A DNA stretch of 64,000 nucleotides, taken from the NCBI RefSeq assembly GCF_040938485.1, contig NW_027271292.1, forward strand, positions 124,001 through 188,000, read 5' to 3'. Under the pieces are notes generated by a model. It made no database searches. It was given only the letters and a program-made list of their open reading frames with translations, and had not been told where the DNA came from. A program made the position numbers and the translations under genes. The DNA is from Diadema antillarum. Lineage: Eukaryota. Shown here one piece after another: positions 26,191 through 64,000 of the stretch (position 1 is the stretch's first letter; every line of letters begins with the position of its first letter).

Positions 26191-26253
<63 letters not shown>

Positions 26254-29200
26254 TGCACGAAGACAATAAACTATGTGCTGGTCTCTCAAATTGATTTAAT
26301 AGGCCACTCAAAAGATTCAGTACTTCAAGTGTGAAGAGTTAAAGGACCTCACATGTCTTTCAGCACTGGATTGTAATGTAAACTACAGAGATGGTATACA
26401 AATGTATGTTGCCTCTTTGCAACTAGGTAAAAATGAATGTCTGCAAACCATTTGAAGTGATCTGATTTCCACCATCACATCTGTAGGTAGCATTGATTGG
26501 AAAGGAGGCAAGGTTTCTGGGTGTGTGTATGCAGGAACAGATGAAATGGCCTCTCTAGCTGCACAGGTTAGTTATAACAATAGTTGTCGTGTGAACTCAA
26601 GTAATTACACTGTAAGTCGTACACTCAATACCATATCCACAAAGAGCTGGGGTTTCTTTTCACTGCATTCCATCAGTGGCAAGTTCAGGATTATATACGT
26701 GATTGTGCAGGTATGAAAGAAACATGATGAAACCTGTTTAAAGAGGTTATTAGCTCTCATTACATGTTTCTCTATGCTTCCTCAATATAAGAATATGGCA
26801 TAGGTCTGGTTTCTCATGTGAGCCGTGTGTGTTAATGTTTGAACTACCTGCAATAATTCAAGTGTGAAATGTAGATATTTTTTTTTATTGAAGCCACCTA
26901 CTAGCCACATACACACTATCATACAGTATGTAATGTAAAAGCATGTGTTGGGTTAACATTAAACTTTTTTTCCGTACGTATGATATCCTTTCACATTCCC
27001 CCCCCCCCTCCCGATTTGTTTAATGGCGCTTCATTTTCTAGTTCTTTTGTTTCATGCATTTACAGTCAATTGATGTATTTTCTCATAATGTTTCCTCTTC
27101 TCTTCTACTTGTTCTAGATGTACGAAGACTTTGCCTGGACCAACCCTCTGCACCCAGATGTCTTTCCTGATGTACGTAAGATGGAGGCAGAGATTGTATC
27201 CATGACACTGAAAATGTTCAATGCCTCCAAGTCTGGATGTGGAACGGTGAGTGTATCAGAAAACTTGATATTGGTATGATATGTCATAATGTATGATGTC
27301 TTAAGTATGATGTCATGTTCACAGAGACAATTCAAGAATGAGTGCTTTATCATTGAAGTGTCATATGATTTCATAGTGGTCTCCCTGAAAGAGGAGAAGG
27401 GTGATATGTTTCTGTTTGATCAGTTTTTATTTGTTTCTTCTTACTAGTATTTTGTGTCTTCTTTTGTGTGTGTGTGTGTGTCAGTATAATCATACCCAAA
27501 AAAATATTCGGAGCAATACTCCGTTAACTTATGCCAGAACATATATCAGATAAAAACCCTCTTGACTGGCTATTAAGAATGGTGAAGATGACATTTAGTC
27601 TCCAAAGGGATTTCATCAGTTATTGCCACATGACACATAAACCGTATGTCCCACCTCACAAATACTGTGTCAGAATATTATAGACACAGAAAACAAGGAA
27701 AGTTATGGAAGATCTATGCAAAAAAAAGACAGCAATCACTAAATGTACATGTATGTATGTAAAATGGACTTTCTTCCTCTAACAAAGAATTTGATACATG
27801 TGACACATACATGTATTCCTTGGTTCTGACTTGGTGCTCCCTGTCTTCAACTGAACACAGATGACAACAGGTGGGACTGAGAGTATCCTAATGGCCATGG
27901 CATCCTACAGAGATTTAGCAACAGAGAGAGGAATTGAATTCCCAGAAATGTAAGTTGAAATGGACTGAAGGCTCTGGCCAAACAAGAAATAGAATACAGG
28001 GGAAAGTTCTGCATTTATAACAAGGACCTCAAAAATGTGACAATTGGGACTGCCTTGTAATATCAGGTTCCTCACTATATCAGGTACAACAACAAAGGAA
28101 TATGAAAAGTCTCTAGGTAAGTGATACAAGTAGCACTACAAGTATTAACATTGTTTTAGTAGCAGGAATGGTTAGTGATAATGGTACAGATAGTGGAAGT
28201 AGTGCTCATGATAGTGCCAGATGTAGGCCTAGTTGTTTATACATAAAATGATACACTGTGCAGATATAGTATGGCTGTTTTATTACCATTGGCACTTAAT
28301 TGATCACATACAACATGTTTTGTGGGGATTGTGTGGAGAAGGGTGATGCAGACAAGTAAATTTGTGTAAGTAAATTTGTGTAAATAAATTTGGGTATGTG
28401 AATGTGAATGTATGTCTATAGTTTCTTGAATACATCAGGGATAGATCTGATTGCCTTTAATATAGAAGTAGATTTCACTATCAAGAATCAGTGCTTAAAA
28501 TGCTAGATTAGATAGACTGTGTGTAAAACTTAATATTTAGACATTATAGTGTGTTCTAGCCTTTCATGGGGATGAAATGGTTCCTATTGTGTGTATGTCT
28601 TTCTTGGAATGTGCATACAGCCTTGCCCCTGTGACTGCCCATGCAGCCTTTGACAAGGCAGCTCACTACTTCAGAATGAAGCTGATTCATCTTCCTGTGG
28701 ATCCAAAAACACACCAAGTCAGCATTAGGGTGAGAGTAGATCAACTTTCCTACAAACACCAACTATACCAGATCTCACATTCACTGCTATCCTGATATGG
28801 TTTAGTAAATATATGATATATCATCCTTGTTGCATTATGTGATTAGATATCAGCAATCATCAATGTCATACTTTAAAATGATACAATGCCTAGACCCAAA
28901 TGACAATGATAATATGCAACAGTGAAATAGTGAGAAAATCACTACTGTGGTTCTGCTTGCAGAGAGAGAATAGCTGAAATGTATCAAATCTACCACTCAA
29001 TCAAAGGTGACAAGTCGGCTTGAATGACCAACATGTCTGTGTCAGGCACAGAATGTCAGACAGTTATATGAGAAGTTACAGTTTAACCCTAACTAGGCCG
29101 GGGGTGGGGCTCCGTGGCCCCCCCCCCCCCCTCGACGTTTCACGCGATGTATCGCTAACGCGAAAAGCTAACGCCGCGACGTTTCATTACTTTTTTCTTT

Positions 29201-32200
29201 CGAGTCTCCCGCATCTTTTGACACCAAATTTGCGATGCCCGGGCGCACGGTTCCGAAGTTTCGCATAAATATGTACGTGCATGTCAGACCAAATATTGCT
29301 CAAAAACGTGAATTCGTGTACAATTTCAATGCAAACTGTGCTTACAGGCAAATTTCATAAAAGCATGATTATTTTGGGGTTTTATTGACTAAAATCAATT
29401 AATAACATATTTTCTTGTTCGGAACAATGTCGCGGACAAGTTTCATCGAAAAAAACAATGAAAAACATAAAGTCGAAAAACAAATAAATACATAGAAATT
29501 CAAAAAACAATAAAATACTTAAGAAATTTTTTCAGATGGCACAATTTTTTTCTCTTATATTTGCTCAGGACACTAAAAAGAATATTTACACTAAAAATGT
29601 GCCCATTTTGAGCTTTATTTAGTGATTTATACCAAATTGTCTGATTTCATGCATTATTATGCATAAATTAGCATAATTAAGCATAAATGATAGGTTTTTT
29701 TTTAATTCAACTTCATGGTACTTTAGATTACGTCATAGGCAATGTGTGTGCGAATTTTCGTCACGATCACACGGTCGACGGCCGAGATCTGGAGGGGGGG
29801 CCTGGGAGGCCCCCCCACCCCGGCTCTATGATCTACCTAAATAGCCCAGCCTAGTTAGGGTTTAACTAGTAGCAATGCCATACATTGAATTTTGTACCAC
29901 CCTCAACGTAACACTACTTTCAGCCTCATTCTTAGAGGGGACACAAAATGGTGGAGACATCTAGGCAGTGTGGTCTCTTAAGATTTACTTTTTTTATTAC
30001 AACAGAGACCAAAGAATGCTTGGAAACTTCTTTGAAATTATAGAGATGGTGAATCTTTATTTCTACACTGTCTTTCGTTGAGAGCTTGATTTGAGCTGGC
30101 AGTGTTAATTGTTTCTGCCCATTTTATGTGTTTGTATCTAAGTTGTATCATGCAGTTTCTCAGTCAGAATTACGCAGCTACTCAAGATATGCACAAATGG
30201 AGCCTGGATAACATTCTTTTCCAAACTCGAGGCTCACTGCTTCATGTTTTTACATCATTGAATGTGACAACTCTCCTTAAACCAGGAAGTCTGCAAACAA
30301 GGAGTGCTGTCTGACTTGAAATTTCTTTTTTCTTTTTGCATCTGAAAATCTCTTTTTCCTTTTCCTTTAGGCAATGAAAAGAAAAATCAGCAAGAGAACA
30401 GCTGTCCTCGTTGGATCGGCTCCCCAATTTCCTTTTGGTATCATGGATCCAATAAAGGATATTGCAGAGGTGAGGCTTTCGAGTGTGATTAGATATATAT
30501 TCAAAATATTTCAAGACACAAGCAAGCCCACAATAAAAAGAGTTATGTACTGTTGTAAAGATAACTTACATCAAATATGTTTGTTAATTTTGTCAGTATT
30601 TAATTGGACCTGTGGTTGTGTGTTGACTTTGCCATTGTTTCGATGAAAACCACTTTGTATGTGTGCGTCTTTTTAATACCAGGTAGAAAACAAGACCGTA
30701 CTACAGTCCAACTTGCCTTACGACCACCTGTCTATAACAGCCACTGAAAAATCCCCCCGAGAGAAAATCCCTGTGAGAGACCCTGTGTATAACAGCCACC
30801 TGTCTAACGCGGCCAGCGGCCACAAATTTTGTTTCCCGCAGTAGATTTTAACCTGTCTATAGTGGCTACAGACCCGATGGAGCGTAAAGGGGTATCTCAC
30901 TGGGTGGCGAACGTTTGCGAACGTAGTGAATTCGGGATTTCACCAGGGTTCATAAAGGGTTGCAAAAGGTTCGTTAACAGTTGCAAGAAAGTTCGCAAAA
31001 GTTTTTATTGTCACAAGCAGTTTTTCTTGTGGCAAAGAAATTTTGAACATATTCAAAAAATTTTTGCGACTTTGTATTCTTGCTAACAGTTGCAAACATT
31101 CGTCAGAAAAGTTGGCGAATCTCAAATTCGCTGCGTTCACAAACATTCGCCGCTCAGTGAGATATCCCCTTTAGCCGTGCCGATAATTCAGCATGTTTTT
31201 TTCTGCTTTGTAGCCATGCTAGTCAATCATGGTCAACATTCAGTGATAGCCACCACTGCATTCATCACTCATTTAGTCATAACAATTAATGCACTAGTGT
31301 TAAACTTTCTTCGCGACTGTACACATGCTACTGTGCAACAATTTCGTAAACACCGGCATTGCTCAATGCATGAAACACACGTGTGCATACGTAAACATAT
31401 GCATACAAACATGTACATGTAAGTACTTGCAGATACTCATGATGCATGTACATGTAGGCAAAAAGTTGGATAACCTGTCTATAGCAACCACCTGACTATA
31501 ACAGCCACTCTTTTTGTTTCCCTTGGGTGGCTGCTAGAGACAGGTTGGACTGTATTTATAATTCTCTTAGCCTCATTGTGGTGACATATGGCTGCAGTTC
31601 CTCCTCTTTGCCTTCATTGTGGATTCTCAGTCCTGTCTCATTAACAATTGAAAGGCTAAAGCAGTGTTCTATTGGTCTCACAGCTAGGTGAATACTACAA
31701 CATACCAGTCCATGTGGATGCATGCCTTGGAGGCTTCCTTATTCCATTCATGGAGAAGGCTGGATTCCCCCTACCTCCCTTTGACTTCAGACTCAAAGGA
31801 GTAACCAGCATCTCAGCAGACACACACAAGGTAAACACTACAACTTCACAGTCCAACAAGTTTGTTTGCAGATCATAAAGCTCTCCTTCAAAACCCTTAC
31901 AGAATCTGACATACCGTAAGCTTGATATGAACTAATGATTCTCAACTATTTGATGTATGTACCATAATGTTCCACCTGACGTAAAACAAGGAAGTGATTC
32001 CTCTGTTGAGTATTTTTCATTTGTATGGTCATTATGGACTGATGGCAAAAATGCATGATATGCCCCAAATTAGGAAAATTGGAAATATTTCATTTACATT
32101 GTATGCTGTCATGTTCTGTGGTTGGTAGGATGGTGCCGATGACAAGGTGATATTGATAGGAATACCACGGGTTCTTTTCAAAAGTAAAGATTATTAATTC

Positions 32201-35200
32201 TTACATTCGATATAAGCAACGATGTATTTAGTGATATTAATATAAGATTCATGAGGATGACCATCACCATCATTAGTTTATTATTGATGAAATACTCACT
32301 ACTATCAGTGTTTTTAAGGACCTCTAATATAGTTGTGTTGACATATCAACAAATTTCTGATTCTTTATTCATCATTTGCTGTGTTGCAGTATGGTTATGC
32401 CCCCAAAGGATCTTCAGTGATCATGTACAGTGAGCAGAAATACCGTCATCCTCAGTTTTTTGTTTCTCCTGACTGGACTGGAGGTATCTATGCCACGCCC
32501 ACAATTGGAGGTGAGAAAAGAAAGACTTGTAGTTTGTATCTCTTGACTAGGATGCAGTGCCACTTTGTCTGTTAAATAAGTGTGGCGATGTGTGAATTCT
32601 CCCTAGGGTATAGATGTGCCTTTGCACATCAGAGTCTGTATTCTTGTTTGCTGTAGGTTGTAAACAAGTATGGAGAGCGGTGTTGTGAATAACCAGTGTG
32701 TTTGTTTGTGAAAACAACTACTGTACATTTGCTTCCTTGCACTTTGTAACTCCAGCACCATCGGATGCACGAGGCAGTTAGCTTCCTTCAGTTGGGTGTG
32801 TCAGTGGTTGCATCTTTAATGTCTTTTCTTTTGAACTGTTCATTGATGTTTTAATAGCAAATACTGAATTCCATGGTCTGAAAATTGTATTCATCAAACT
32901 GAAAATATAGATTTAAAGTTGAACAGCTTTGACGAAAGAATTAGCATGCTTGCACAGTTTGTTTAGGTCAGACTGGTGCACACCAAAAATATGTGGGTCA
33001 ATGCAACATGGTATGACTATGCCTTTCAGTCAACAATGTAATTATTCAATACTGCAGATATGTTTTTTAAAAATATGATATATGAAATAGTAAGGTCACT
33101 TTTATGTTATTTTATGTGCTTTGTGCATTAGGAAGCCGTGCTGGAGCCATTATTGCAGCCTGCTGGGCAACCATGATGTTCATGGGTGAAGATGGTTATG
33201 TTGAAAATACTCGCAAGATTGTCAGTACTGCAAAGAAGATTGAAGAAGGGTGAGGAACTACTTGCTATCTAGTACAGTGAATGTACCTCACACAGTCTCC
33301 TTGGTTGTGATGGGAATCACAGTTTGGTTTTTACCATAAAGCATGGTGTAACATGAATTTAATTGGTTTCTTTCTTTCTTTCTTTCCTTATGTGTGTATG
33401 TGGGTTTTTTTATGTGTTTTTTTGTGTGTGTTTTTATTTATTTGTTGTTGTTGTTTTTTTGGTTTTTTTTGGTTTTTTTTTTGGGGGGGGAGGGGGTTGG
33501 AGTTCAGCTCACCTGACCCAAGACCCCAAATGAACTGTTGCAGTGTACTTCACATGCCTTGTGCCTTGTCCATAAACTTTTTTACTATATTTTCATCTTT
33601 AAAATGTAGGGGTAGACGATCAACAAATATCCAAATGATTCAGGTGATCCACATGAGGGTCCAGAGGTAGGGCCCAAAAGTAGAGTAAAAAAGACCCAAA
33701 AGTGAGATGATTTCAAAGATCTTCTCCAGATCCATCAGTAGGAAAACAAGTTGTTGCATTAAGATTTTTAAGTATGAGGATTTTAAGGTTATAAAGTATT
33801 TAAGGTATTCATGACCGTGGCAGTAAGTAGTACATAGCTGGATTATGCACCCACATTTATAAGAGGGAGAGAGTGAAGAGTTGAAGTGAGGCCCGAGGGC
33901 TAATCGTAATACACTATTCTTTTCCTTGATATTGCACGAACAGACTTCGAACAAGCTTAGCAGGAATCATTCTTAGGTGTCAGGATTAAAGAGAAGTTAA
34001 TACAAATGAGGTTGCCTTATGTGTGTGTGTGTGTGGGGGGGGGGGGGGGTGGAGGGTTAAGTTGCCTCTGTTGGGGCCAAGGGGCATGGCCAAAAAGACC
34101 CAAAATGATGTGAAATTCGTCAGCTCTTCAACTCCAAAACCAGAAGTAGTAAGGAGTTAGACACCGTCATTAACTCTGTTACATGGGCGTGTGAGCTTCT
34201 CATGATATTCACAGTAATGACCCAAAGTTGTACTTAGGGTACTGATGATAAATTTTGGGCCCTAATCTAGTGCCGCTATAATGCTGCTGTTCACGCAATA
34301 ATTTTGGCAACGTGTTATGCAATGGAATTCTGATTCAGTGCGTATTTAGTAAAATGATTTATGCATTTGAACATATAGTACCCATTCATCCAGTAGTAGT
34401 TCAAAGAAATATAAATCTGCACACATCTATGCATTACAATGTATCTCTTACTTATCCTAAATAGCTGGGGGGGGGGGGATATTTGTCTTAAGTTGCAACA
34501 CCATCACTGAGTGTGAATTCCTCCATGAAAAGAAATTTGTTTTTATGTCATATAAAACAGAATGACATATATTCAGTCTTGCGCTCACATGCTTTATTTT
34601 CTGCAGAAAGAAAAAAGAAGTCAAGTCTTGTCCAATCATTTGAGCCTCTATTTTCAGAAGATGTGAGAGTGCCTTGTCCGATTTGCATAGGTTTCACATA
34701 CAGTTACATGAGACAATGAAGAAAATAGCTATGATTAGAATCAGCCAAAAGGCAACACTTGACATGTATAGTCAGTCCTTTACAAGATATGAATCCAATA
34801 GAGATGAGATATGTTATACATCTACATCACATGCCTGTTTCAAAATAATGATATTTACATTTTATTCCTTGCATAGTTGCATCTATACTTTTTGCAATTG
34901 CGTTTGCTGGTTTTCGCTGTCGACTTTGTCTGGAAGAGACAATGTTAACACGTGGATTAATTTTATCAAAGGATACTTGAGATATGAATGAACCCAGAAC
35001 AGTTTGCTAAATTCAAGTTTATTTGTTTAAGAGCTATTCATCGTTATTTGTGTACAGGCTACGTAAGATACCAGGCATCTTTGTGTATGGCAAGCCTGAT
35101 GTGAGTGTGGTTGCTGTAGGATCCAAGGATTTCAACATCTACCGTCTGTCTGGTGATCTGACCAAACGGGGATGGAACCTCAACTCACTCCAGTTTCCTT

Positions 35201-37175
35201 CAAGGTAAACACTTCACCTATATCAAAAAGGATTAATTTTGGCAATATTCTCTCATAATTCCCTTTGATTTTGTTTGTTGGTGTGTATTTTTATGGCGTA
35301 TACATGTACATTTTTCACATTCCATGTATAAATCATTCATTAGATTTTGCCAATCGTACAAATCTGAGTATGATATCGCTTTAACTACCTGATTATACAT
35401 CACATTAAAGATGTGTTTTAGTCAAGGAGAAAGACCCAGTCTTCAAATGAATTTTTTATGATGCCTCATAATGTAGAGTATTACCTTTGAAAATAATACC
35501 TGCAAGAGTGAACTCATCATCTGGAACTAACTGCATGATACCTACAATTGAGGTATGTTCAAGCATCTCGATTTGCGTGACTTTAGAATAACATGATATC
35601 TTTGGCTTCCTGTCCAACTTGAATGATGACAGTGTTGTACCTTACCTGTATGTGAAGCCCTTTGATGTCATCTGTAATGATTGTATTCATGATAATATTA
35701 TCCTTATTGGCTCTCAGCTTCCACCTGTGTGTGACTCTACGGCAAACCGTCTCAGGAGTGGCAGAAACCTTCATCAAGGATGTTGAAGAGTGTACTGCAG
35801 AAATCATGAAAACACCCAATGAGAAGGCACAAGGAACTGTGAGTGTGTAGTTGTTGCTACTTAATCCACTCATGTACACTCCCTTGTGTATGCAGAGCCC
35901 TTGTTTATTCACAAGGTTTGGATGGAAGTTTTATTTCAGTTTATAAAATGTTTTAGCCCAACAAATGCATAAGCTGTGTGTGAATAGTGTCTTTGTTACT
36001 TACAAAGGGGTAAGGTGGTTTTGGGAATTCTCTTATTGTGTGAATCTAGATTTAGTATGACAATCATTTTTTAGGGGATAAAAAGCTGTTTCAGCACAAT
36101 ATTTCAAATTACTCAAGATAGGGAACACTTATATACATGTAGTACAACATGACAAGAACAGTGCTTCACAATGATGGTTTGGAAAGTGCATAATGACAAG
36201 GGAATCGTGAAAAGTTTTGAGTTAATGATTGTGTGTGCTGTAAATAATTACTTGAAAAGGAAATGTGGAAGGAAAGGGAGTCAAATACATTTCTTGAATT
36301 CATAAAAAGCCAACAATGTACATTGAAACATCATTGTATTTTTGACTGCTGTGACTAGGTACCCAAGAATATACTGTCCTGTCTCCTCCTTTGCATTTTA
36401 TGATCTACAGTATCAATATAGACAATCATGTATTCATTCTGCAACCAATCTATTATCCTAACCATCTGTTCCCTTTCTACTCATGCATCCATCCATCAGT
36501 CAGTCAACATACCTTTTGTATTAACCAGCTATCCATTGATAAGCAAAAAATTCAGGCAATGATTTACCACCAAATAGTTCAACCATCCATCTGACATATC
36601 AAGCTATTAACTTATTTTCTCTTGGTTTTTTCAAGGACTATTCTAGAAGACACACATGTAGGAAGGATTGATGAAAACATTTCTACCTCTGCAGCAAAAT
36701 TCTTCCCGCAAACAATATGTGAGGAGTCCAAGATAAAGAAAAAGAAATGAAAGAAAAGGCCTGTTTGTCAGTTTGTCTTGAAATCTTACAAGATTATGTT
36801 TCACTTATGCCATTCATAGTTCTTGATTCCAAATACATTTTGTTTTTGTTTTTTTCATGTTCTGCTGAAGTTTTCTGTATGTGGCAAATGATCAGTTGTC
36901 CAGTTTGTGGTATCTCATGGTGTGAATTGTTTCGCCTCCCTTGAACATCAATTTGAGTGCTTGTTTAGAAATGTATTTCAAATGCCAAGACTGCCTTGAT
37001 GTAACATAATGGATAGACTCTAGCTGTGATTGAACCGATGTGTGATATGCATTTCACTCTATTTCAACAGGCCGCTGTGTATGGCACTGCCCAATCCATT
37101 CCTGATCGGTCTTTGGTTTCCGACCTAGCCAAGGGATACCTTGATGCCTACTACTCTACCGACCCACTGGATTAG
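22545..37175 (+). CDS. SGPL1: Sphingosine-1-phosphate lyase 1 (SGPL1a), 14 exons after the ATG exon; complete to the stop codon (about 544-551 aa depending on the first exon)
   Basis: Exons 22545-22692, 24180-24247, 25194-25344, 26487-26566, 27118-27246, 27861-27949, 28621-28729, 30371-30469, 31684-31830, 32390-32510, 33132-33249, 35058-35204, 35718-35838, 37071-37175. All introns are GT-AG and the phases chain without stops (1632 nt). Motifs [49 protein letters not shown] (PLP lysine), [15 protein letters not shown]. Confidence 0.95.
24180..24247 (+). CDS. SGPL1: SGPL1a exon
   Basis: ctgcag|(T)[22 protein letters not shown]|gtttgt. Confidence 0.9.
25194..25344 (+). CDS. SGPL1: SGPL1a exon
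   Basis: ttaag|[11 protein letters not shown]...[22 protein letters not shown]|gtaagt. Confidence 0.9.
26487..26566 (+). CDS. SGPL1: SGPL1a exon
   Basis: ctgtag|(S)[26 protein letters not shown]|gttagt. Confidence 0.9.
27118..27246 (+). CDS. SGPL1: SGPL1a exon
   Basis: [43 protein letters not shown]|gtgagt. Confidence 0.95.
27861..27949 (+). CDS. SGPL1: SGPL1a exon
   Basis: [29 protein letters not shown]|gtaagt. Confidence 0.95.
28621..28729 (+). CDS. SGPL1: SGPL1a exon
   Basis: [36 protein letters not shown]|gtgaga. Confidence 0.95.
29087..29860. mobile_element. piggyBac-like MITE in an SGPL1a intron
   Basis: TTTAA|CCCTAACTAGGC...GCCTAGTTAGGG|TTTAA; CCCT/AGGG termini. Confidence 0.75.
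30371..30469 (+). CDS. SGPL1: SGPL1a exon
   Basis: [33 protein letters not shown]|gtgagg. Confidence 0.95.
30704..31552. mobile_element. pogo/Tigger-like MITE carrying a nested MITE
   Basis: TA|CAGTCCAAC...GTTGGACTG|TA with repeated acctgtctataacagccac subterminal motifs. Confidence 0.75.
30887..31172. mobile_element. Nested MITE with ~38-bp imperfect TIRs
   Basis: taaagggg-tatctcactgggtggcgaacgtttgcgaacg vs reverse complement of right end taaaggggatatctcactgagcggcgaatgtttgtgaacg. Confidence 0.75.
31684..31830 (+). CDS. SGPL1: SGPL1a exon ending in the PLP Schiff-base lysine
   Basis: [49 protein letters not shown]|gtaaac. Confidence 0.97.
32390..32510 (+). CDS. SGPL1: SGPL1a exon
   Basis: [40 protein letters not shown]|gtgaga. 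Confidence 0.97.
33132..33249 (+). CDS. SGPL1: SGPL1a exon
   Basis: (G)[38 protein letters not shown](G)|gtgagg. Confidence 0.95.
35058..35204 (+). CDS. SGPL1: SGPL1a exon
   Basis: [48 protein letters not shown]|gtaaac. Confidence 0.95.
35718..35838 (+). CDS. SGPL1: SGPL1a exon
   Basis: [40 protein letters not shown]|gtgagt. Confidence 0.93.
37071..37175 (+). CDS. SGPL1: SGPL1a last coding exon
   Basis: caacag|[34 protein letters not shown] (TAG at 37173-37175). Confidence 0.95.
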   Translation, partial: AAVYGTAQSIPDRSLVSDLAKGYLDAYYSTDPLD

Positions 37176-43110: not shown

Positions 43111-43968
43111 TTAAATGGTATAATGTATAATCCTATGCCATTGTTGTTCCCTCGTTTTTCTTTAGTAGAAATGTCTATGGTGGAAGAGCTGCTTTGTAGA
43201 AGTTATATGAAATACAGATTCTGTAGAAGGCTTTTTTTTTTCTTCCATTTTGTCCTGCATTGTTACCTAACTGGGACAATTCAATTAGCTTAATTACCAA
43301 GTTGTTAATGTTTGTAATAACAAGTGTACTTTATAATAACAAGCTTGTCTTGTATTGAAGGAGTTAGTTTCTCATTGAATCCCTAAAATGAACGCTGGTG
43401 TGGAATTTAATCACACACACAGATGACAAAACGGAGGGACAGAATTTATCTGTTTTGTGTATTTCATTATATTGTGCCTTGCATTATTGTATTGTACCAA
43501 TGCATAATCTTATTGACATCCATATTGACGGAGACACAATTGGCGACGAAGATGTGTATCTCTTACGAGTTCCTAAGAGGTTACTATGCATAAAATCCTC
43601 GGACAGTGTTCTGTACAACCGTAATCACAGTTTCGCAACACTTTGTCGACAAGACTTAAACAGTAAAAGGGTATTGTCATCATAATTATGCAACGGATTT
43701 GAAGAAGATGCCAATATTACGATAGGGGTTGGGCAATGTTGTCATGATATCGATAGAGCAGAGATAATGTCTCCGTCCACAGGAACTCACAAGCCATTTA
43801 TGAGAACAGACGAGGGTTTCATAAAAATCAAAGGTATGCCATGTCCATCTGTTGACATTGTTGAAACTTTCCATTTCGAGAGACAACTTCCAAAACAATT
43901 TCCTCTACTTCTTCAGGTGTGTAAATATCTCTCTAGACGGTGGCCAACATATCTTTGGTTATCTCATC

Positions 43969-45324
43969 ATGGATACGACGGAGAAGCTGATGATGGAGTC
44001 AAAGACCCGGCTAACCAAGAGGCTTGTTGTGGTTGCCATCTTTTTAGCTGTAGTCATGGACAACGTACTTTATATGGTGGTTCATGCCATTCTTCCAAAC
44101 TACCTTCGATCTATCGAAGCATTCCAGCAGGAAGTGGATATCACATCCCGACTAAACCGCAGTGACTCGTGGTACGTCTCGACCAGTGGACTAGATCATA
44201 ACATTGATGGAGGTAAACCCTTCGGGATCCTGTTTGCTGCGAAAGCCATCTTTCAGCTCGTTATGAACCCTGTTTCGGAGGTCCTGATCGATAAGACTGG
44301 CTACACTCCTCCTATGATGATCGGACTTGTTGCTACTGTCCTTGCGAACATGTTTTTCTCCTTCGGAAAGAGTTACGGATTACTGTTTGTCGCCAGGAGT
44401 CTGCAGGGTATCGGATTTGCATTTATCGACACAGCGGGTTTCGCTATGGTAATAGATCGTTACCCCTGCAGATCAAAACGAGACCTCGTCGTAGGGATAA
44501 GTCTGGTTTGTGCCGTTGGAATCCGACTGACTTTTACGTCATTTAGATTCCTCATGATGCAACCATTTACAGGATTGCTGTTCTTGGCAGGAATGCTTGC
44601 CTCCTTGTTGATTATTGCATTTGTCCCCGTTCCTAGGGGTACTTTGTGTCTCTTGGCCTGTAAGCACTGCACAGAGGACAAATGGCAAAGGCCGGGGACA
44701 ATGCGATTCTTCAAGTATATCGTGAATCCCTACATCGCCTTTGCCGCTTGGGTGTTGTCCGTGTCGAACGTCGCAGTAGCGTTCCAGGAACCCACCATGT
44801 CTGTTTGGATGGATGACACCATGTGTGCTCTAAGCTGGCAGGCTAGCATAATTTGGTTACCAACATTCCTCCCATACATCATAGGCGTTTCGACCACTGT
44901 AAAGTTGGCAACTCAATCGTCTCAAAGGCTATTGAAGATGGCAGTAGTCACGGGCACAACGATCATTGGAATCAGCTCTTGCTTTAGTCATCTTTGCAAA
45001 ACTTTCTGGACATTAACGTTACTCCTCTGCGGTATCGGCTTCGGCAGTGCATTGGTCACTTCCTCCCTTTTCTCAACCGCACGCCATCTGGTCGAGCAAC
45101 ATAGGTTAAGGAGTGTCTGTGCCATTGCTCGCATCTTGCATTCAGTATCATACGCAGTTGGCCCTGTCTTCTCTGAACAACTTGTTCAAGATATGGGCTA
45201 TCCTAAACTCAGTGTTATTGTTGGCGTCTGCGCTCTTATTGCTTACATGCCAATATTATTCATTCTCTTCAAAGTCCATCAGGCGTCTTCAGAATCTGAT
45301 GTGATTGTCGTTTGTATTCAGTGA
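43969..45324 (+). CDS. SLC18A3: Divergent vesicular acetylcholine transporter-like protein (SLC18/MFS), 451 aa from the first Met; may extend 5' via spliced exons
   Basis: Uninterrupted ORF collinear with VAChT: VMDNVLYMVV, GILFAAKAIFQLVMNP, ARSLQGIGFAFIDTAG, NPYIAFAAW..SNVAVAFQEPT..WMDDTM, WLPTFLPYIIGV..TVKLA, SVSYAVGP. Strong splice acceptor tttcctctacttcttcag| at 43916/43917 just upstream. Likely a paralog rather than the canonical ortholog. Confidence 0.85.
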   Translation: MDTTEKLMMESKTRLTKRLVVVAIFLAVVMDNVLYMVVHAILPNYLRSIEAFQQEVDITSRLNRSDSWYVSTSGLDHNIDGGKPFGILFAAKAIFQLVMNPVSEVLIDKTGYTPPMMIGLVATVLANMFFSFGKSYGLLFVARSLQGIGFAFIDTAGFAMVIDRYPCRSKRDLVVGISLVCAVGIRLTFTSFRFLMMQPFTGLLFLAGMLASLLIIAFVPVPRGTLCLLACKHCTEDKWQRPGTMRFFKYIVNPYIAFAAWVLSVSNVAVAFQEPTMSVWMDDTMCALSWQASIIWLPTFLPYIIGVSTTVKLATQSSQRLLKMAVVTGTTIIGISSCFSHLCKTFWTLTLLLCGIGFGSALVTSSLFSTARHLVEQHRLRSVCAIARILHSVSYAVGPVFSEQLVQDMGYPKLSVIVGVCALIAYMPILFILFKVHQASSESDVIVVCIQ

Positions 45325-52085: not shown

Positions 52086-52121
52086 ATGGAAGACTTTCTT
52101 CACACACTTGTGGACAATGGA
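52086..52121 (+). CDS. SGPL1: SGPL1b probable first coding exon
   Basis: gcgaaATG MEDFLHTLVDNG|gtaagt, phase 0, at the 3' end of a CpG-rich stretch (about 51.5-52.1 kb). Confidence 0.7.
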
Positions 52122-54534
52122 GTAAGTATGATTGCCTACTTATCAAATGGCCTAAATGTGGCATATGATACAGATGAATATTTGACTTTTCTCCATAAGT
52201 TTTACCGGTAGGCCCTATGCTAACAAGTGCAGATTGTTTGTTGTGCCATGCTACCGCTGTCTAGATCACGTTGATTATGTTGATATGCGCTACTTCCGCA
52301 AGCATGCATGATGACACAGATTGATGAGCACAGAAGAATAATCGAAGAATTCTAAATTGATTTCTAGTATCTTAATTAGACCCCCCCCCCCACCATCGCT
52401 GCATGCATGTTGTATGCATGTTGTCCATTGCCTTCTTTTTGATGCAATGACAATTCATTTCAAGAAGTAGGAATCTATTTGTATTGCTTGTTTGTAACTT
52501 GACCCCCCCCCCCCCAGTTTATACTCAAGATTGCATCTTTAATTGGCCCAGACAATGCCAATGGATGGCATTGCTGTTCATTTGGTGGTTGTTGTATTAA
52601 AACCTGTCCAACACACAAGCATTAGTAATGATGATGTCAGATGGTGATGATGATGATGATAATGATAATTAATGGTAATGATAATAATAATAATAATGAT
52701 AACAGCAACAATAATACATGTATCACTAAGAATAAGAATAAGAATGATAATGGTACCAAGGGTAATTATAATTAAAAGGGTATTTATATTGTATAATGCC
52801 CATTACTGCTCAATCTGAGCACTCAAAGCTAGAAGAGGGTATGAAAAAACTCACACACATCATAAAGAAAAGAGATAGGGGAAAGAAAGAGAATTCAGAC
52901 ATTGAATCATCGATAATCATAATGCTAAAAGTGTGGCCAGAAGCTTCATGTCTGCATATCATGCCCGAAAAGTAAATAACCCAACCAAGAGAGACTATTG
53001 TAAAAGGAAAAAAAGTATAAAAAAGGAAGGAAATTTATGATAACTGACATGATTACAAACATATAAAAAAGACCAACATTAGGAAAGATTAGAGAAATTT
53101 CAAATGGCACTATTATAGCAAGAATTAAGAGGGTATCAATAATAATGTCAGAAAAACAAAGGATATGCCAATGATACACACTGTAGGTGGAAAATAGTTT
53201 AACATAGGGAAACAAAGGTCAATTACAAGTAGAGTATGATCAAATGGAAATTGATAGAATTATGACAAGAAATAAAAGGGAAAGAGTCTACTTTTTGTAC
53301 AGATAAAGATATTTTTAGCATCAAGATATTCTCATTTCCTACACTTGTTAGAAAAAAAAAGAAAAAAAAAATCTAAATTGGTATGACCAGTGTAGGATGA
53401 CAGCAATCACCCCACACTGCCCAGTTATGTTTGTAACTCTCTCGCTGGAAACTAAGGGCACTAGGTAGCACATATGTTCAAAGATGATGTCATGGAAATC
53501 AAGAGGACTTGTGAACAGTGGGAACGGTGAACTATCAAACTCTAATGAGGCAGTCCCTAGTGAATACAGTACCAGGTCTACAGGTCTACAAATGTTAATG
53601 ACTGCTAAGCTTCTTTGTCTTACAAGCAGATCTTGGGACATGAGTCTGTTTAAGGCAGCTCTTGTGGACCCAACAAGTTTAGATAGGACTGTGTGTCTAG
53701 ACTAGCTGGTGTTAGAATCAGATGCAGTTTGTACAAGTGACATCCAGTCCTGCCTGCCATAATATTACTTTGGTGCTTATTGAGTCATATTTCACCAATT
53801 GTAATGAGAATAGTTTATTGTGACTATCAGGCATAAATGAAATAGTTTCACAAGTTATGTGTGTTCTCCAGTAGTTTTCTGCAGCTCTGGTAGTCGCCGA
53901 AACCCTTGATCATGTTGACGATGTCCTTTCGGAATGGCCACCTGTCCAGCTGGTTCTGATTACTGCCATTGCTGTCATTGCCCTTCTCTCTCTTCACAGA
54001 TGGGTATGGGACTCACATTTGAGTGAGTAGACTGATTTCCACAGCATATTCCTATTTTACCACAACATTAATAATAGGATCTATTTTGAAGATTTTTTTT
54101 TTCTAACCTCCCCACCCCAAACTTTCTACCCCTGAAGTTTACTCGTAAGTGTTATTTGTTCATTATCACTGTACAATGTGTATCTTCATCAACAAGCATC
54201 TAAATGTATAGTAATATTAGGGGTAGGGTGTTTAGTCTACAAGTTAATACACATTCAGTGACAAAGTAATGATCTCGGTCATGATAATTTGCATATAGAC
54301 CAGCCATAACTGATGCTGAATGTTTGGTCTATCTACTCGATGACCTCAGTGCATTACAACATATTATATGCTTTTTGTATTACATCTTTATTTATGGCTT
54401 TGTTTAAAGCCATACAACATTTACTTGTTTGTTATTCTTCCATGCCCCCTGGCGGGGCCGTTCAAAAATAAAATTCATTGTCGTTGTCATTGTCATTGTC
54501 ACAACATATCATGCTGACCAACAAGGAGATATGA

Positions 54535-54579
<45 letters not shown>

Positions 54580-57500
54580 GCAACCTCACGTCAAGGGAAG
54601 TCATAGTACAAATTATGGCTGTCTATCTATTCATTGTGTGTAACATCTTATACACCTCTTGGAATGTTCAAAAAGCAATTTTCCTTAGATTTTGTGTGAA
54701 TTTAGCATGAGAGATGAAAGACTACATATCAGTATTTGTGAAAGCATTCTCTTAACGTATGTTTATTACCGGTATTCTTTTAGCCTTGCTTGAAAGAGGA
54801 AAGAGGAAATTCTTCAGGATGCTTCGAAGCGCCCCATACATCGGCAGAAAGGTAATACCAGATGACATAGCAACAATCATATTGTCCTGAACATGATGTG
54901 GACGCTGACATCAAAAGTGTACTGTATACATGGCATATTTCACAATGTTTTTATTTTTCAGGCCATTGGTACAGCTTTCTGCTTGAAGTCCCCCCCCCCC
55001 CCCCCCCTTTGTTCATGTTGTTGTTATTTCACCCCTTTCCTATCCTTCACCTCTTTGTTGTTCCTGATCTTGTTTGATGTTGCCTTCCTATTCATCCTTA
55101 TCCTTCACAGGTTGCCCTCTTTATAATCCCATCACTGGCCTTTCCCCTCCCTTTTGTTTGCTCTACCCTTTTCTTTAATCCCCCCCCCCTTTATACCCAT
55201 TTGGCTCCCTAATTGACACCTAACCTTCCCCATTTGTTTTCTGTGTTCCATGTCCTCTGTATGTTTGTCATTTTGCCTGTGATGAAGATTCTGCTGGGAT
55301 TGAAAGCTAATTCCCCACAAGACTCCTGTTTTTATTTTTGCAAATTTTGCAAGTCAGCTTATACATGTATTTGTGAAAATCAACTCATGAGGATAGTACC
55401 TACTGTAATGCAAATGCTTTGTATGACATTTTCCAATCTTAGAAATCTTAATTTTTTTTCCTGAAAAGGGATAGACTTTGTTCTCATTCTATCACTATGC
55501 GTCTTGATTGTAAATTAAACCACATGCAAAAGTGTCATGCAAGTCCCAGTTCACAAAATATTACACTTCAAAAGGAATATAAATGGCATATATAGTGCAA
55601 CCTCAGTTAACCTAATGATACAATTACTGCGTGTACTATTTATGAATGAAGATTTATCTGCAATACTGCAGGATTTGTCGATGTAATGACTACATGGGCA
55701 GAGTAGTGATAAGTGCAGAAGATTTGTATAATACAAATGTTTGCATTAAGACGACTATAGGGCTACAGACTCTCAAGGAGTCATTTCTAAGAGATATGGA
55801 TTACTTCCAATAATTTGCTATGCAGCTTGTAGGCTAACAAAGTTGTTTGACTTCATTGTTTGATTGCAAATGTCATATGCTCTGTTGTATTTTGTCTTCT
55901 CTTTTTTTTGTGATCATTTTCAAGATTCAAGAGGAGCTGACCACAACAAAAGCCAACATTGCAAAGTCATCCTTCAAGCTTCCCAAGGGACAGAGCTACC
56001 AGACCTGCCTCCCACAGACAGGAATGGGGAAAGATGAGCTCATGGATTGCATTAAGAAAAACTACAAGAATGTTGGTAAGCAAAAGGTTATCATGAGTAT
56101 ATTATACTGAACCAAAAAACAAAGAAATGCAAAGAAAGAAAGAGGCACATCGAATTACTCTACAGAAACAAGTTACTGTAAAACCAGAAATTTTTGTGAA
56201 TTTCGTGAGGAGCCAAGTGCTCAAAATTCAATATGCAGGAAACTTCTTGTCTTAACTATGCATTGAATACCAGTGACAATTTTTGACAATTTCATCCTGC
56301 CAGAAAGGCCGTCTGCTCCAAATCGCGAACATTTCTGTCTGTGACTATTTCTGCTCTTACAGTAAACTTTCCCAAATTAGTCATCTGTCTATAGCTACTA
56401 CTTTTAAGAGGCTGGGCATGTAATCCATGCATCTGACATACAATGCCATACCGCATATCTGTGGTTGTGTTGGTATTAAAGCATAATACCATGTACAGTT
56501 AAGTCTGTCTATAGAGGCTACCTAAGGAGACAGTAGGAGTAGATATTATAGACAGGTGACTGCAATAGACATGCTATCTGACATTTTGTGTGTATTGCAT
56601 GCATGTTCATGTATTGTCATTGCATGCATCTGTAAGCATCTACTGAGCTCAACCTTGATTGTACATCTTCATATGAGTTTAATAAAAAACAAGCACACAC
56701 TACGTAAGAAAAAGGCGATAAAATTCTGCGATGCTTGCACTTTTCACACGGAAAGATAACAAATATTGATAGAAGAAACTTTAATCTTTCTATTGAAAGT
56801 GTTTTCTGGCTCTGTCTCTCTTATGAGATGTTGGCAGTATGTCTTTATAAAAAGCAATACTTTCTATGGGACAGCCCCTTTGTGCAACACAATATGGGTA
56901 GTCATATCCATGTGTGCTGGTTGTGCCTCGTTCCATGCGTCTACACCATATTCTTATGATTTGATATTTTATGTATTAAAATCAGCAGTCCTTCAGACCA
57001 ACGAAGATTGCATTTATGTAGAGGACTGACTGTTGGCACTTGTCCTGTCTTTTTTTTCTGTGCAGAAGAGATAGCATGGCAGGAGGGCAAAGTATCAGGA
57101 ACAGTTTACATTGGAGATGAGAACAAGGAGCTCATGGGCAAGGTAAACATGTCATGAAATAATGTGATGAGCATGGACTGATTCTTAATTTACATTTTGT
57201 GACCAGAAAAAGGCAGTCTTGTGAAAGTAATGCATTTAATGACAATATGAGAGAAGTATAGGAAATGTGTGATGAACATACAAATTTGATGTGATGTGTA
57301 TGACTGGGGTGCACGTCACGAGACCAACACCCACGGGTCGTATACAACCTACAAGTTTTACAGCCCACAAGTCATACAGCTCCCGAGTGAAACAGCCTAC
57401 AAGTCATACAGCCCACAAGATTGACATCAAGTAAAATAGGCCTACGAGTTATACAGCCCATGAGTTCGACACTTACGCAAAAAAAGGCTCACAAGACCGA

Positions 57501-60500
57501 CACTACGTAAACAAAGACACAAAGTAAACTTGCTTCCGTACAGGCACAGTATGCCTGTAATGGGAGAGATTGTAGGGTATTCTTGAAGAAGTGTAATGCA
57601 ATTGATTAATATAGATGGATGATTTAGAGTGAAGTGGTACTGCAGTCCCAAATAATAAATATAGTAATGATGATGATCATGATAATGATTGTGATCAATG
57701 TAGTGATGAGAATAATAAAAAGATTCCCGAATACTTTGCAGGATGGTTGGTATGGTCTATCTGTTTGAGGTTAGGGGTCATGTGCCATTTACAAGCAATC
57801 AACTCTGCAGATTTGTATAGTATTGAGCATTTGCCATCCTGCAACAATATTTTGGGATATTTTGCAATAGCATTTCACATGATAACGTGTCATGTCTTGC
57901 ACTATTAGGCAAATATCAGCATACTGGTGACAATATGTACCTTTTTTCATGACAATCTATGCAGCCATATTGAATAGAACACACAAAGCACATCTTGGCA
58001 TCAGATTTGTAATTGCAATTGATTGACCTCACATTTTATCTGTGATATCAGACTAACTCTGTTCATGCCATGGAATTGCAAACAAATGCAAAGTTGCATT
58101 TGATTCATATGGCTCAAGTAGCAATTGTAATCAGTTGTAACTTTCTAGGTAATAGACCCTTATTGATTTAACTCATCATACTCAAACAAAGAATTATAAA
58201 ACCATAAGGTTAGGGTACTTGAGAAAAGGTCAGAACCAGTTAGACATAACAATTCCAGTAATATTCATGAATCATGGAAGACATTACCAGCGTTGTATAA
58301 CTTGAGTTATTTGTATATTTTCTGCAACTTGCCAAGTACTGCAGTCACAAATATCTTGATTCCAACTAAAGTTTTGATAACCTTTTCAACTTATAACACT
58401 TCCACTTTTTGTCATTGTTAAACTGTTATTCCTCAACTTGCGCATATTAACCATAAGACAGCAATCTATCGTTATTTAGAACATACAGATGTGGCACTTA
58501 CATCAGTGTATGTAGAAGAGTGATGGTAATCCTTGTTGATTATAGGTTTTTGAGATGTTTTCTGGAGCCAATTTGCTACAGCCTGGTGTCTTCCCAGGAC
58601 CACGAAAGATGGAGGCAGAGATTGTGGCAATGTGTTGCAATCTCTTCAAGGGAGGACCTAATGCTTGTGGAACAGTGAGTTGATTGGACCTTTATGGTTT
58701 ACAAGTATGTCTTTACATGTGTGTGACAAATACTACAGCCTAGATTGTGAAGTTAATCTATCATATTTAGCTCTGATAAGTATAGCTCTTGGCCATAATG
58801 AAGTTTCAATACTAAAGTTGTGATTGTATGAAGTGTAGAGTAGTTATATGAGAGGAGATTTGCCAGAATTTTGTGGAACTTAATACATTGCTTCACATGT
58901 AAGAATACATCTCCATTTCTTCCCCATTTGTGGATTAGGGTATACTTTCTCCTTTTTCCTTTTTTATATTACTATTGTTTTGTTTGTTTCTTTGTTGGAG
59001 GGGGAGCACTGTTGATCTTACTCTATCTTGTACAGACATGATGAAGATATGATGAATGTTTAAAGTATATTTACAGCAAAGATCACGAGCATGAAACTGT
59101 TGTGAATATTGCAAGGAGCCAGAATTCGCGTAAAGTAAAATGCACATGAAAGTTTTTATCTACACAATACATTACTTGTAAATGCAAGTCTCAAATTCAT
59201 CCATTTCATGAGAGTTACATGCTGCAAAAAAGGCTGTCAGGATTGTTGATTTTCTAAATTGTGTAGGTGTGATTTATCGTCCGTGGAATATAGTTCAACA
59301 TGATATGAATGAAGCCTGATTATTTCCTGCTATTTTATCTTCGATGGATAAATCTGTGCTGAAAGATTTGTACAGGTACTCCAGGAAATCCTATGAGCTT
59401 GTAGACATGTTATTCAGTATTGTAGCTGGTGTAGAATCGTTTATCATACACATGTGTTTGACAGACAACTTCTGGAGGTACAGAGAGTCTCCTGCTTGCC
59501 TGTCTGGCCTACAGAGAGTATGCAGCAGCCAAAGGGATCACCAAACCTGAAATGTAAGTTATTAGCCTCTATTAGTTTAACAGAGAAACACATCATAGAC
59601 ATTAAGCTCACTACAGTCATCTGATATGTGATACACATTAGGGACAAAGGCCTACATGATACACATTGACCAAGATTGCATGCCTGGATAATGTATCAGT
59701 TTGTGTATTAGCATTGAGAGGCAGATTGGGGAAGACTGATTTCATACCTTTGTCTCCAATCTACTTTCAATATTTTACAGCCAAACATTATTTGATATGA
59801 CCCACACCTTAGTATATACCAGAAAGCACACTGTGGAGACATTTTACTGTGTGACATTATGAATATCAATACTGTGTCTTGCATGTCTTCAACTATCAAG
59901 AAGGGATTTGTCTGCAAATCTTGTCAAAGACTGAGTTTTGCCGCATTTGATTATAACATTTGTGAAATTCTGCAATCACCAGACATTTACACAGGATCAT
60001 TTGGAAATCCTGGGCAACAAATTATAAAAAGTACAGTCTGGTATATGTTGGGTAAACTACAGGAACAAGTCTATGGTTGGTTTTGAAATGAAAATAGAGT
60101 TGATCTATATATTTTTTTTGATTTCTGACAATTCAAATGAAGCATCGTAACTATGGATTATTTCTTTGAAGGAAGCTGGCAAGATGAATTCTATGTCTAT
60201 GGTCCTAGCTTGGATCATTTTATCCTTGTCTTTATAGTCTCCTACCAGACTCTGGACATGCCGCATTTGAGAAGGCAGCACACATGTTTGACATGAGAAT
60301 TGTTCACTCACCTTTGGAAAAGGAGTCTTACAGAGCTGATGTCAAGGTTCGGGACATTAATTTGCCATTTGAAAAATTTTCTGTACTAATTTGACGACCA
60401 CATATGATCCATGTATAGTCTGCATTGGATAGAGTAAAACAAACAATCTCCACTCCCACTACTGTACTCCTTTATGCAATGCATGTCAAGGGAGAACCTC

Positions 60501-61067
60501 AAGCCTTTAACACATAGAAGACTAGTTGCAAGTATTCTTGGGAGTGCTTTAGCAATATCAGCTTGTCCTCAACAGATTATTCCTTGGCTCTGCGTAACTG
60601 TACAACCAATTTCTGTTCAAAGCATTTCATAATGTAACTGTGCAAACCTAGTAGTAAAGGAAAGGAGGTGTTTTTGTATTTCTTGCCATACATACAAATG
60701 AGCTGAGCAATGCACAGCAATACCTTATTCTTGACCCTTGATGTGAATAGAAAGGTACTTAACTCTGAATTCTGTGTGTTGTTACAACTAGTGCGCTATT
60801 TTTGCACGCACACAAGTAGATATTGTATGAAAGAATGTCAACAAAACATGTGAGTATTTTGGTACACGTGAGAGAAAATTATCATTGAAGAATGCTTGGC
60901 ACTGGCTTTCATCTCATTAATGCCAGTTCTGATGCATGGTTTGGTATTGATATCCTTTTATTATGCAGGCCCTGAAGAAACTGATAAGTAAGAATACCTG
61001 CATGATAGCTATCTCAGCTCCATGCTTCCCTCATGGCATCATCGACCCTGTTGAAGACATTGCCAAG
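52086..61067 (+). CDS. SGPL1: Second sphingosine-1-phosphate lyase-like gene (SGPL1b), first 9 coding exons; the remainder lies beyond the window
   Basis: Exons 52086-52121, 53875-54022, 54784-54851, 55925-56075, 57066-57142, 58546-58674, 59465-59553, 60238-60346, 60969-61067. GT-AG introns, phases chain without stops. Lengths 148/68/151/77/129/89/109/99 mirror SGPL1a (148/68/151/80/129/89/109/99). Confidence 0.92.
53875..54022 (+). CDS. SGPL1: SGPL1b exon with the membrane anchor
   Basis: cagtag|FSAALVVAETLDHVDDVLSEWPPVQLVLITAIAVIALLSLHRWVWDSHL|gtgagt; 148 nt as in SGPL1a. Confidence 0.8.
54784..54851 (+). CDS. SGPL1: SGPL1b exon
   Basis: (T)LLERGKRKFFRMLRSAPYIGRK|gtaata. Confidence 0.9.
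55925..56075 (+). CDS. SGPL1: SGPL1b exon
   Basis: IQEELTTTKANIAKSSFKLPKGQSYQTCLPQTGMGKDELMDCIKKNYKNV|gtaagc. Confidence 0.9.
57066..57142 (+). CDS. SGPL1: SGPL1b exon
   Basis: (E)EIAWQEGKVSGTVYIGDENKELMGK|gtaaac. Confidence 0.92.
58546..58674 (+). CDS. SGPL1: SGPL1b exon with the altered NPLH motif
   Basis: [43 protein letters not shown]|gtgagt. Confidence 0.93.
59465..59553 (+). CDS. SGPL1: SGPL1b exon
   Basis: TTSGGTESLLLACLAYREYAAAKGITKPE|gtaagt. Confidence 0.95.
60238..60346 (+). CDS. SGPL1: SGPL1b exon
   Basis: LLPDSGHAAFEKAAHMFDMRIVHSPLEKESYRADVK|gttcgg. Confidence 0.92.
60969..61067 (+). CDS. SGPL1: SGPL1b exon
   Basis: ALKKLISKNTCMIAISAPCFPHGIIDPVEDIAK|gtttgt. Confidence 0.93.
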
Positions 61068-61970
61068 GTTTGTACCGATTGAGATACGTTCAATTCAAAT
61101 CTTAGGGATATGAAACTTGTAGTTTATATCTTTTATTGCTTTAACTTCTTTCTTTTTAAAGTAAATCTTATTCATTTGAAGTCCTGAGTGGTAACAGCCT
61201 CTCAGAGTGAGAAAATAACATTTGTGATGTAAAATTTCCTAACAATGTTTATATGAAAGTCACTTTGAAAGTCACTTCTTTTTTTTTTTTGGACAGTGCT
61301 GAGAATTCAAAGTTGATACCTTGACTGCTTGTTTGATGCCACAGCTGTGATGTGCATCTGAGCAGATAGCTGATATTAAAGGAAAGTAATTATGACCATG
61401 CATTATTTTTTGGGGGGCGTAGTGATAGGATAATGTGATAATGTGATGGCACAGCCATTCTTAATCACACTTATAATCACATATCGTCGCTGGGGTGTCA
61501 AGACCTCGTATCTACACAATGTCAAATGTTCAGGAGAGCCAAAAAAACATGGCGGCCAAAGCACTGTGGCGAATGGGATAGCCTTTCCTTTGACATGCCG
61601 TGGTGGCTTCATTTTTAGAGTAAGACAGTTGGGATTTGGACAGGACATCACTCAACCCATTATTTGACCATTAATCCAAAAAAGTCATTTTCACCAAAAT
61701 TGCAGATACAAGGTCTCGTCACCCCAGCGACAATATATGCTTTAATGTCTTTAAAGTGCAACACACATTCAGTAGGAGAATGTCACTGCTTATTGGGAAG
61801 TAAAGTAGGATCTTACGTATTCCAAAAAGGAATGCAAAGATAAATGTAAATTTTAGCATGAGAGGTAAAGTAAAATGACTGCTGGTAAGCTTCAGTTTCT
61901 TCAAGAAAAAGATAATGAATGATGTCATTTGTCAGAGATGAGATTTAGTGGACCACAAATTGCACTTTGA

Positions 61971-62151
61971 AGGGATGGTATAGCATTGGTTACATATCTC
62001 AACCATATCAAAACCAATTTTCGTCAAATAAACTTTGAATTCGTCTTTGAATAGAATTGTATGTTCTTTCACATTTCATAAGAGGGTTCTCATCTCACAA
62101 AAGATTGGGAAATCTGAAGTCAGCCATCTTAACCAAAACTATACCATCCCT
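61971..62151. mobile_element. Short internally deleted copy of the TTAA-flanked MITE family
   Basis: TTGA|AGGGATGGTATAG...CTATACCATCCCT|TTAA, perfect 13-bp TIR. Confidence 0.7.
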
Positions 62152-63966: not shown

Positions 63967-64000
63967 ATATTCTGAAAGAAAAGACTTTAAGCTTTAAAAT

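Follow-up and report, generated by a model that had tools for sequence, protein, structure and literature searches.

An intact, constrained VAChT-derived gene of Diadema that lacks residues required to bind acetylcholine and vesamicol

Introduction

In the cholinergic locus, the gene of the vesicular acetylcholine transporter (VAChT, SLC18A3) is nested in the first intron of ChAT, and elsewhere in the SLC18 family SLC18B1/VPAT and Drosophila portabella are precedents for paralogues with a different or unknown substrate. Here we describe a VAChT-like gene in a 64,000-nucleotide stretch of the Diadema antillarum genome (hereafter the window; NCBI RefSeq assembly GCF_040938485.1, contig NW_027271292.1, positions 124,001 to 188,000 of the forward strand), which an earlier note, made from the letters alone, had read as an intact transporter with its conserved transport residues rewritten. 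In VAChT (human numbering throughout), D398 lies at the ammonium of acetylcholine, four acids build a negative pocket, D398A and D398N abolish vesamicol binding and D398H causes myasthenia (PMC11369146), and motif C in the fifth transmembrane helix (TM5) is the antiporter motif (PMC5138259). No published description of this paralogue was found in the literature searched.

Results and discussion

Gene structure, fold and evolutionary placement

The gene has stayed intact and under constraint, it derives from VAChT, and the residues on which binding of acetylcholine and vesamicol depends are gone from it. Its single exon holds 451 codons from the ATG at 43969, close to the 450 or so open codons of the earlier note, and lies within a longer open reading frame (ORF; 43852-45324, + strand) that the ORF listing of the window counts as 490 amino acids from a TTG. 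The window corresponds, with 100% identity, to D. antillarum contig JBFRCO010000404.1 of GCA_040938485.1. The ORF matched a single Pfam family, MFS_1 (PF07690), and HMMER comparison with all PDB sequences placed human VAChT at the top (E 1.5e-71 and 245 bits for the whole ORF; E 1e-66 for the main 361-residue stretch against PDB chains), above VMAT1 (184 bits) and VMAT2 (about 160 bits). Structurally, an AlphaFold2 model built on a 40-sequence alignment (predicted local distance difference test, pLDDT, 79.9; predicted TM-score, pTM, 0.81) has twelve transmembrane helices in an MFS arrangement, and a Foldseek search of the PDB again put human VAChT first, in structures that hold acetylcholine or vesamicol (8xtw, 8zms; TM-score 0.88-0.89 by target length), followed by VMAT1 and VMAT2. 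Human VAChT is also represented by structures 8ZMR and 9KKN. By this model the twelve-helix MFS (DHA12) fold is retained, pLDDT falling under 50 at just two places, luminal loop 1 and the rewritten TM5 (residues 189-205).

Evolutionarily, we aligned 101 SLC18-type sequences, comprising those of Diadema, named VAChTs and representatives drawn from 1.84 billion proteins by exhaustive search. By sequence and tree, the Diadema protein belongs within the VAChT clade (SLC18A3): in a quick tree that carries long-branch caveats, the pair from D. antillarum and D. setosum fell on the VAChT side of the VAChT/VMAT split with a Shimodaira-Hasegawa-like approximate likelihood-ratio (SH-aLRT) support of 100. 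Identity to VAChTs is about 34-40%, and protein searches, including the exhaustive one, returned nothing outside Diadema closer than about 40%. Of the columns that show at least 80% conservation among 24 VAChTs, 197 in all, Diadema has replaced 88 (45%), compared with 2-20% in other VAChTs, fast-evolving rotifer and nematomorph sequences included, and these 88 replaced positions are identical in both Diadema species. The Diadema stem measures 4.6 substitutions per site, against 0.3-1 for typical VAChTs, and the two Diadema tips are only 0.07 apart; at the present rate such a stem would exceed the age of echinoderms, so that we infer that an early burst, adaptive or relaxed, preceded the constraint.

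Closer kin did not emerge from the searches. A word-indexed search with the whole query returned Diadema and insects only, a search restricted to TM2-TM4 gave five matches, and the best of the latter (P0330 and P0331) were discarded as near relatives at 36-38% identity over their full length. The top representative of the exhaustive search (P0047) is protostome-like, and its 120 matches listed are all from protostomes. A canonical echinoderm VAChT was named neither by the exhaustive representative search nor by three cluster look-ups; we assume that the gene is a paralogue of a canonical VAChT retained in Diadema.

Residues of the transport pathway

The residue calls of the earlier note held up throughout. 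HMMER alignment to human VAChT agrees that D46 (VMDNV), K131 (AAKAI), D193 (FIDTA), E309 (FQEPT) and W331 are retained, and codons read directly, together with the alignment, give H338Y, D398T and D425R, the last at the residue proposed to pair with K131. Over these eight positions both Diadema proteins read D-K-D-E-W-Y-T-R, every full-length canonical VAChT reads D-K-D-E-W-H-D-D and VMAT-type sequences read D-K-S-E-F-Y-D-D, so the Diadema protein shares the VAChT-specific D193 and W331 with VAChT, whereas the VMATs carry S and F there and keep the aspartates of TM10 and TM11. Across the alignment, threonine at position 398 is unique and a single other sequence shares the arginine at 425; the 398 column as a rule holds an acid (D or E), from which about 13 divergent representatives differ. 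The proper alignment that the earlier note had called for leaves both positions non-acidic, and a realignment that would bring an acid to 398 or 425 was rejected, because neither Asp nor Glu occurs anywhere in TM10 or TM11. SLC18B1-like representatives are likewise altered at the D425 position, where they have Q, which shows that this position can vary within the family. Most SLC18B1/VPAT-type orphans, in contrast, keep an acid at the D398 position and are ancient and widespread, whereas the Diadema protein is VAChT-derived and confined to its genus.

The changes are unevenly spread over the binding site. When the human VAChT residues seen by cryo-electron microscopy (PMC11369146) are mapped on the alignment, the acetyl-side contacts N47, Y50, M51, N302 and Y432 are kept, and the choline or cation side is altered at six positions (I221T, S225F, L305V, I394S, D398T and Y428H). 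In the cytosolic gate R210 is kept, a 3-residue deletion takes out Y417, Y421 has become Cys and A406 Arg. The VMAT residue occupies four positions at which VAChTs are 88-96% conserved, namely Y338 in TM8 and G391, S399 and S400 in TM10 (window 44875-44877 and 45043-45066), and by sequence this amounts to a partial VMAT-like pocket without the Asp. Beyond these four residues, the likeness to VMAT1 and VMAT2 (SLC18A1 and SLC18A2) is one of fold and family.

These features bear on whether the protein could still be an acetylcholine or amine/proton antiporter that uses other residues, E309 and D46 for instance, to bind its cation. Those two acids, D193 and the acetyl side of the pocket are indeed retained, an older model had E309 as the acetylcholine-binding acid (PMC5138259), and the four VMAT-like positions count in its favour. 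Yet in all three SLC18A members the amine is bound by D398 or its equivalent, and D398A, D398N and D398H are all loss-of-function changes (PMC11369146), an acid is the norm in that column, and both the aspartate-to-arginine change in TM11 and the arginine gained in TM5 would repel a cation. We thus find this explanation barely credible; from its sequence, the protein would no longer carry acetylcholine and would not be an acetylcholine/proton antiporter of the canonical type.

TM5 is rewritten as the earlier note had said: the human segment GVALAFISFGSLVAPPFGG aligns with GIRLTFTSFRFLMMQPFTG, with eight extra residues just ahead. Only P230 and G233 survive among the glycines and prolines tested in motif C, and the altered positions are 96-100% conserved in VAChT and VMAT-type sequences. 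The eight inserted codons (VGISLVCA) are possibly an old tandem duplicate of the eight codons that follow them (VGIRLTFT), a weak resemblance with 14 of 24 nucleotides identical. Luminal loop 1 and the tail are shorter than in VAChT. The loop carries an N-R-S sequon that may be glycosylated, and the tail contains SSESDVIV, whose proposed correspondence to the human SERDVLL sorting motif was reproduced by HMMER, which aligned it with RSERDV(LL). This dileucine-like element, SESDVIV, is identical across all Diadema copies and may serve in sorting.

Constraint and copy number

The ORF of D. setosum is open over 450 codons, with start ATG and stop identical to those of the window copy, and shows the same Y/T/R at positions 338, 398 and 425. 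Between the two, the nonsynonymous-to-synonymous rate ratio (dN/dS, Nei-Gojobori) is 0.32 (dN 0.020, dS 0.064; 20.5 nonsynonymous and 19.5 synonymous changes), which is below 1 by a binomial test (p 2.6e-4) and in a simulation that used the transition/transversion ratio of the flanks (p = 0.006 for 20 or fewer nonsynonymous changes of 38). The ratio is 0.33 for the N-terminal 278 codons and 0.30 for the C-terminal 172, and since the halves share one ratio, selection acts on the full-length protein and not on the truncated RefSeq models. The flanks diverge by 6.2% over 5.9 kb, equal to dS, and contain 8.6 indel events per kb, compared with 2.8% and a single 3-nt indel in the 1.35-kb ORF, where 11.6 indels would be expected at the flank rate (Poisson p 1e-4). 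A contig derived from matching runs (X1-X3) carries the same in-frame 3-nt deletion, at 44943, and no other ORF indel among the rows listed.

Three further intact D. antillarum copies lie on a second contig, JBFRCO010001480.1, which repeats the SGPL1-then-VAChT-like order at about 97% identity to the window and is probably the other haplotype; all are open, start and stop as the window copy does, and keep Y/T/R. This contig came to light through a second D. antillarum RefSeq protein, which one of the cluster look-ups returned. They belong to a 9,196-bp unit (equivalent to window 38099-47743) present in at least three tandem copies, of which units 1 and 2 differ by 1 nt and the ORF of unit 3 has three substitutions, all nonsynonymous. 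The tandem units may reflect copy-number variation between haplotypes, a paralogous region or, in part, an assembly artefact. Between the window copy and the other contig, dN/dS is 0.63 and not significant, a value ordinary for polymorphism that nevertheless fits rather lax constraint.

With these data the interpretation as a processed or decaying pseudogene fails, as five open copies contain no stop or frameshift, dN/dS is 0.32-0.40 and the one indel is in frame. A related possibility is a recent duplication whose product is under relaxed selection, heading towards a pseudogene and open only for want of time. Its restriction to Diadema, with nothing above about 40% identity elsewhere, would fit, as would the within-species ratio, the all-nonsynonymous differences among tandem copies and the truncated gene models. 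Against youth, the protein differs in about 60% of its amino acids from each VAChT known, yet its 451 codons contain neither stop nor frameshift, which is incompatible with neutral drift; only one in-frame indel has arisen since the Diadema split where 11.6 were expected; dN/dS is significantly below 1 in both halves; and the two species agree at all 88 replaced conserved positions. We therefore give this alternative a small chance.

The RefSeq models of the locus, named 'vesicular acetylcholine transporter-like', run to 291, 296 and 256 aa, against a conserved product of 450-451 aa. As proof of genuine internal splicing we discounted them: near-identical D. antillarum copies were given different donors, and the C-terminal part that they skip is constrained as much as the rest. 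The models are likely mis-annotations.

Proposed function and its alternatives

Our leading reading, somewhat more likely than not, is that the gene encodes a lineage-restricted, VAChT-derived orphan transporter of an endosomal or vesicular membrane whose substrate is not a simple cation. The gene would have begun as an offshoot of SLC18A3, intronless like its parent, placed between two sphingosine-1-phosphate (S1P) lyase genes; after duplication, a burst of change would have replaced nearly half of the positions conserved in VAChT, and its product would then have been held under moderate purifying selection. What was kept is the twelve-helix MFS fold, the half of the acetylcholine pocket that the N lobe provides (N47, Y50, M51, N302), the three buried acids D46, D193 and E309, K131, and the dileucine-like tail. 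The C-lobe cation site has been dismantled (D398T, D425R, Y428H, I394S, S225F), with arginines added at G224 and A406 and motif C degraded. Through D398T and D425R the cavity would be at least three charges more positive, two negatives having been lost and at least one positive gained, which would favour substrates that are neutral, zwitterionic or anionic and disfavour cations of the quaternary or primary amine type. Proton coupling, if retained, may proceed via E309 and D193. Of the earlier proposal that the gene reflects a different substrate or coupling rather than simple decay, the second half stands on the intact ortholog, the dN/dS of 0.32 and the strong depletion of indels relative to the flanks; the first, drawn from lost and gained charges, is plausible.

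Several observations weigh against an active orphan transporter. The substrate argument is one of charge counting by homology to 8ZMR and 8ZMS. Glycines and prolines invariant in VAChT and VMAT are lost (a motif A Gly to Glu, G224R, P229Q, G232T and several TM8-TM10 prolines), and together with the low-confidence TM5 these losses may mean that transport has gone altogether, for which the 45% of conserved positions replaced also leaves room. The within-species ratio of 0.63 and the three of three nonsynonymous tandem differences make the constraint weak for a transporter. Since only two congeneric species carry the gene, the constraint test, a comparison of two congeners plus haplotypes, covers a short branch. 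The NCBI models are short and differ in length even between near-identical copies, and the matching runs X1-X3, contig sets of genome size from a D. setosum-like organism, represent DNA and not RNA, because the contig of the locus covers non-coding flanks.

Much of this would be expected if the protein were a transport-dead VAChT relic kept for trafficking, scaffolding or regulation, with selection acting on fold and sorting signals. Acids of TM10 and TM11, motif C glycines and a proline are gone, the motif A glycine is Glu, Y417 is deleted and Y421 is Cys; TM5 has pLDDT below 50; dN/dS of 0.3-0.4 is lax for a transporter; and the tail motif is conserved. Such a relic would not, however, be expected to keep N47, Y50, M51, N302, Y432, D46, D193, E309, K131 and the prolines of motifs D and G if its cavity were irrelevant, nor to have its N- and C-terminal halves equally constrained. 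We regard a transport-dead protein as unlikely, though with a chance worth keeping in view, and favour the orphan transporter.

Genomic neighbourhood

The gene is intergenic and lies on the same strand as two S1P-lyase genes, one on either side (Table 1). An exon of the upstream gene, SGPL1a (31660-31875), matches human SGPL1 (E 2.7e-21), and one of the downstream gene, SGPL1b (60209-60391), matches S1P lyases (E 8e-5); in D. setosum a lyase is likewise upstream of the VAChT-like gene. No ChAT gene was called within 10 kb of the VAChT-like gene, the rest of the window having been spot-checked only, and the locus is not the ChAT-intron position. It resembles the cholinergic locus in that a SLC18A3-type gene without introns adjoins, on one strand, genes whose enzyme acts in amine and lipid metabolism; unlike that locus, it has SGPL1 neighbours in place of ChAT, and its position is intergenic. 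In a more specific scenario, the transporter would have exchanged its cationic amine for a zwitterionic or anionic cargo, for example phosphoethanolamine, a phospho-base or a sphingoid phosphate, and would act with the flanking lyase paralogues as an enzyme-plus-transporter unit like ChAT/VAChT. As the linkage is seen in one genus only, it gives no evidence of functional coupling, and we think this scenario has a slender chance.

Table 1. Positions of the VAChT-like gene, its altered segments and neighbouring genes in the window
Feature	Position	Strand	Remarks
VAChT-like coding sequence, single exon	43969..45324	+	451 codons and stop; first ATG 43969; TGA 45322-45324
N-R-S glycosylation sequon, shortened luminal loop 1	44155..44163	+	From translation; in low-pLDDT loop, residues 63-79
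8-codon insert VGISLVCA before TM5	44491..44514	+	Gap placed by HMMER against human VAChT
TM5 'antiporter' motif C, degenerate	44518..44574	+	G224R (44545-44547), A228M, P229Q, G232T, human numbering
Tyr at H338 position (VMAT state), TM8	44875..44877	+	Codon tac; alignment
Thr at D398 position; TM10 substrate-amine-binding Asp lost	45058..45060	+	Codon act; also in D. setosum and all D. antillarum copies
Arg at D425 position; TM11 Asp to base, K131 kept	45130..45132	+	Codon cgc; alignment
C-terminal SESDVIV	45289..45309	+	Against human SERDVLL dileucine motif; acid kept, LL to IV; protein ends 4 residues later
RefSeq models, truncated or internally spliced	window 43969-47026; D. setosum L001 10001-11491		XP_071496662.1 (291 aa); XP_072165324.1 (256 aa)
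SGPL1a, sphingosine-1-phosphate lyase, multi-exon, upstream neighbour	25092..37175	+	Exon translations; called gene with PF00282
SGPL1b, second SGPL1-like gene, downstream neighbour, towards window end	52086..64000	+	Called gene with PF00282

The region before the ATG had been proposed to hold an in-frame upstream exon (43783-43833, + strand), a suggestion that found no support, as indels break its frame in other copies. We rejected it because of two length differences, one of 31 nt at 43951 and a deletion of 1 nt at 43786: the 31 nt, located 18 nt before the ATG, are missing from the window copy and present in D. setosum, the second contig and the read-derived contigs, and the deletion, inside the proposed exon, occurs in two of three runs, with another at 43766 in all three. 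None of these indels preserves the frame, and the D. setosum ORF opens at the same ATG as the window copy. Independently of the exon, the 31-nt loss could alter the 5' untranslated region or promoter of the window allele. About 850 bp upstream of the ATG lies a 567-bp self-complementary foldback resembling a miniature inverted-repeat transposable element (42548-43114), an insert missing in D. setosum, the second D. antillarum contig and the read-derived contigs, although the element itself is extremely abundant in the DNA runs.

Elsewhere, the window contains a satellite array at 7484-9115 (period about 154/330 bp, about 80% matches), which also occurs in D. setosum (L001 13511-16491), where related arrays lie downstream of the VAChT-like gene. 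An SRCR-domain exon stands at the window start (76-561, - strand; PF00530, E 3e-12), and a reverse-transcriptase fragment just under the Pfam cut-off (12781-13437, - strand) comes from a decayed retroelement.

Conclusions

For annotation, the RefSeq gene models in two Diadema species fall short of a conserved product of 450-451 aa. For the family, D398 and its equivalents have been held indispensable for every SLC18A transporter, and here both the TM10 and TM11 aspartates are gone and motif C is damaged while selection persists. As the gene occurs in one genus only, the finding has limited significance. Within that scope, the Diadema protein could separate the SLC18 features required for folding, sorting and alternating access from those required for cation recognition, and could bring to light a new vesicular-transporter cargo in an echinoderm.

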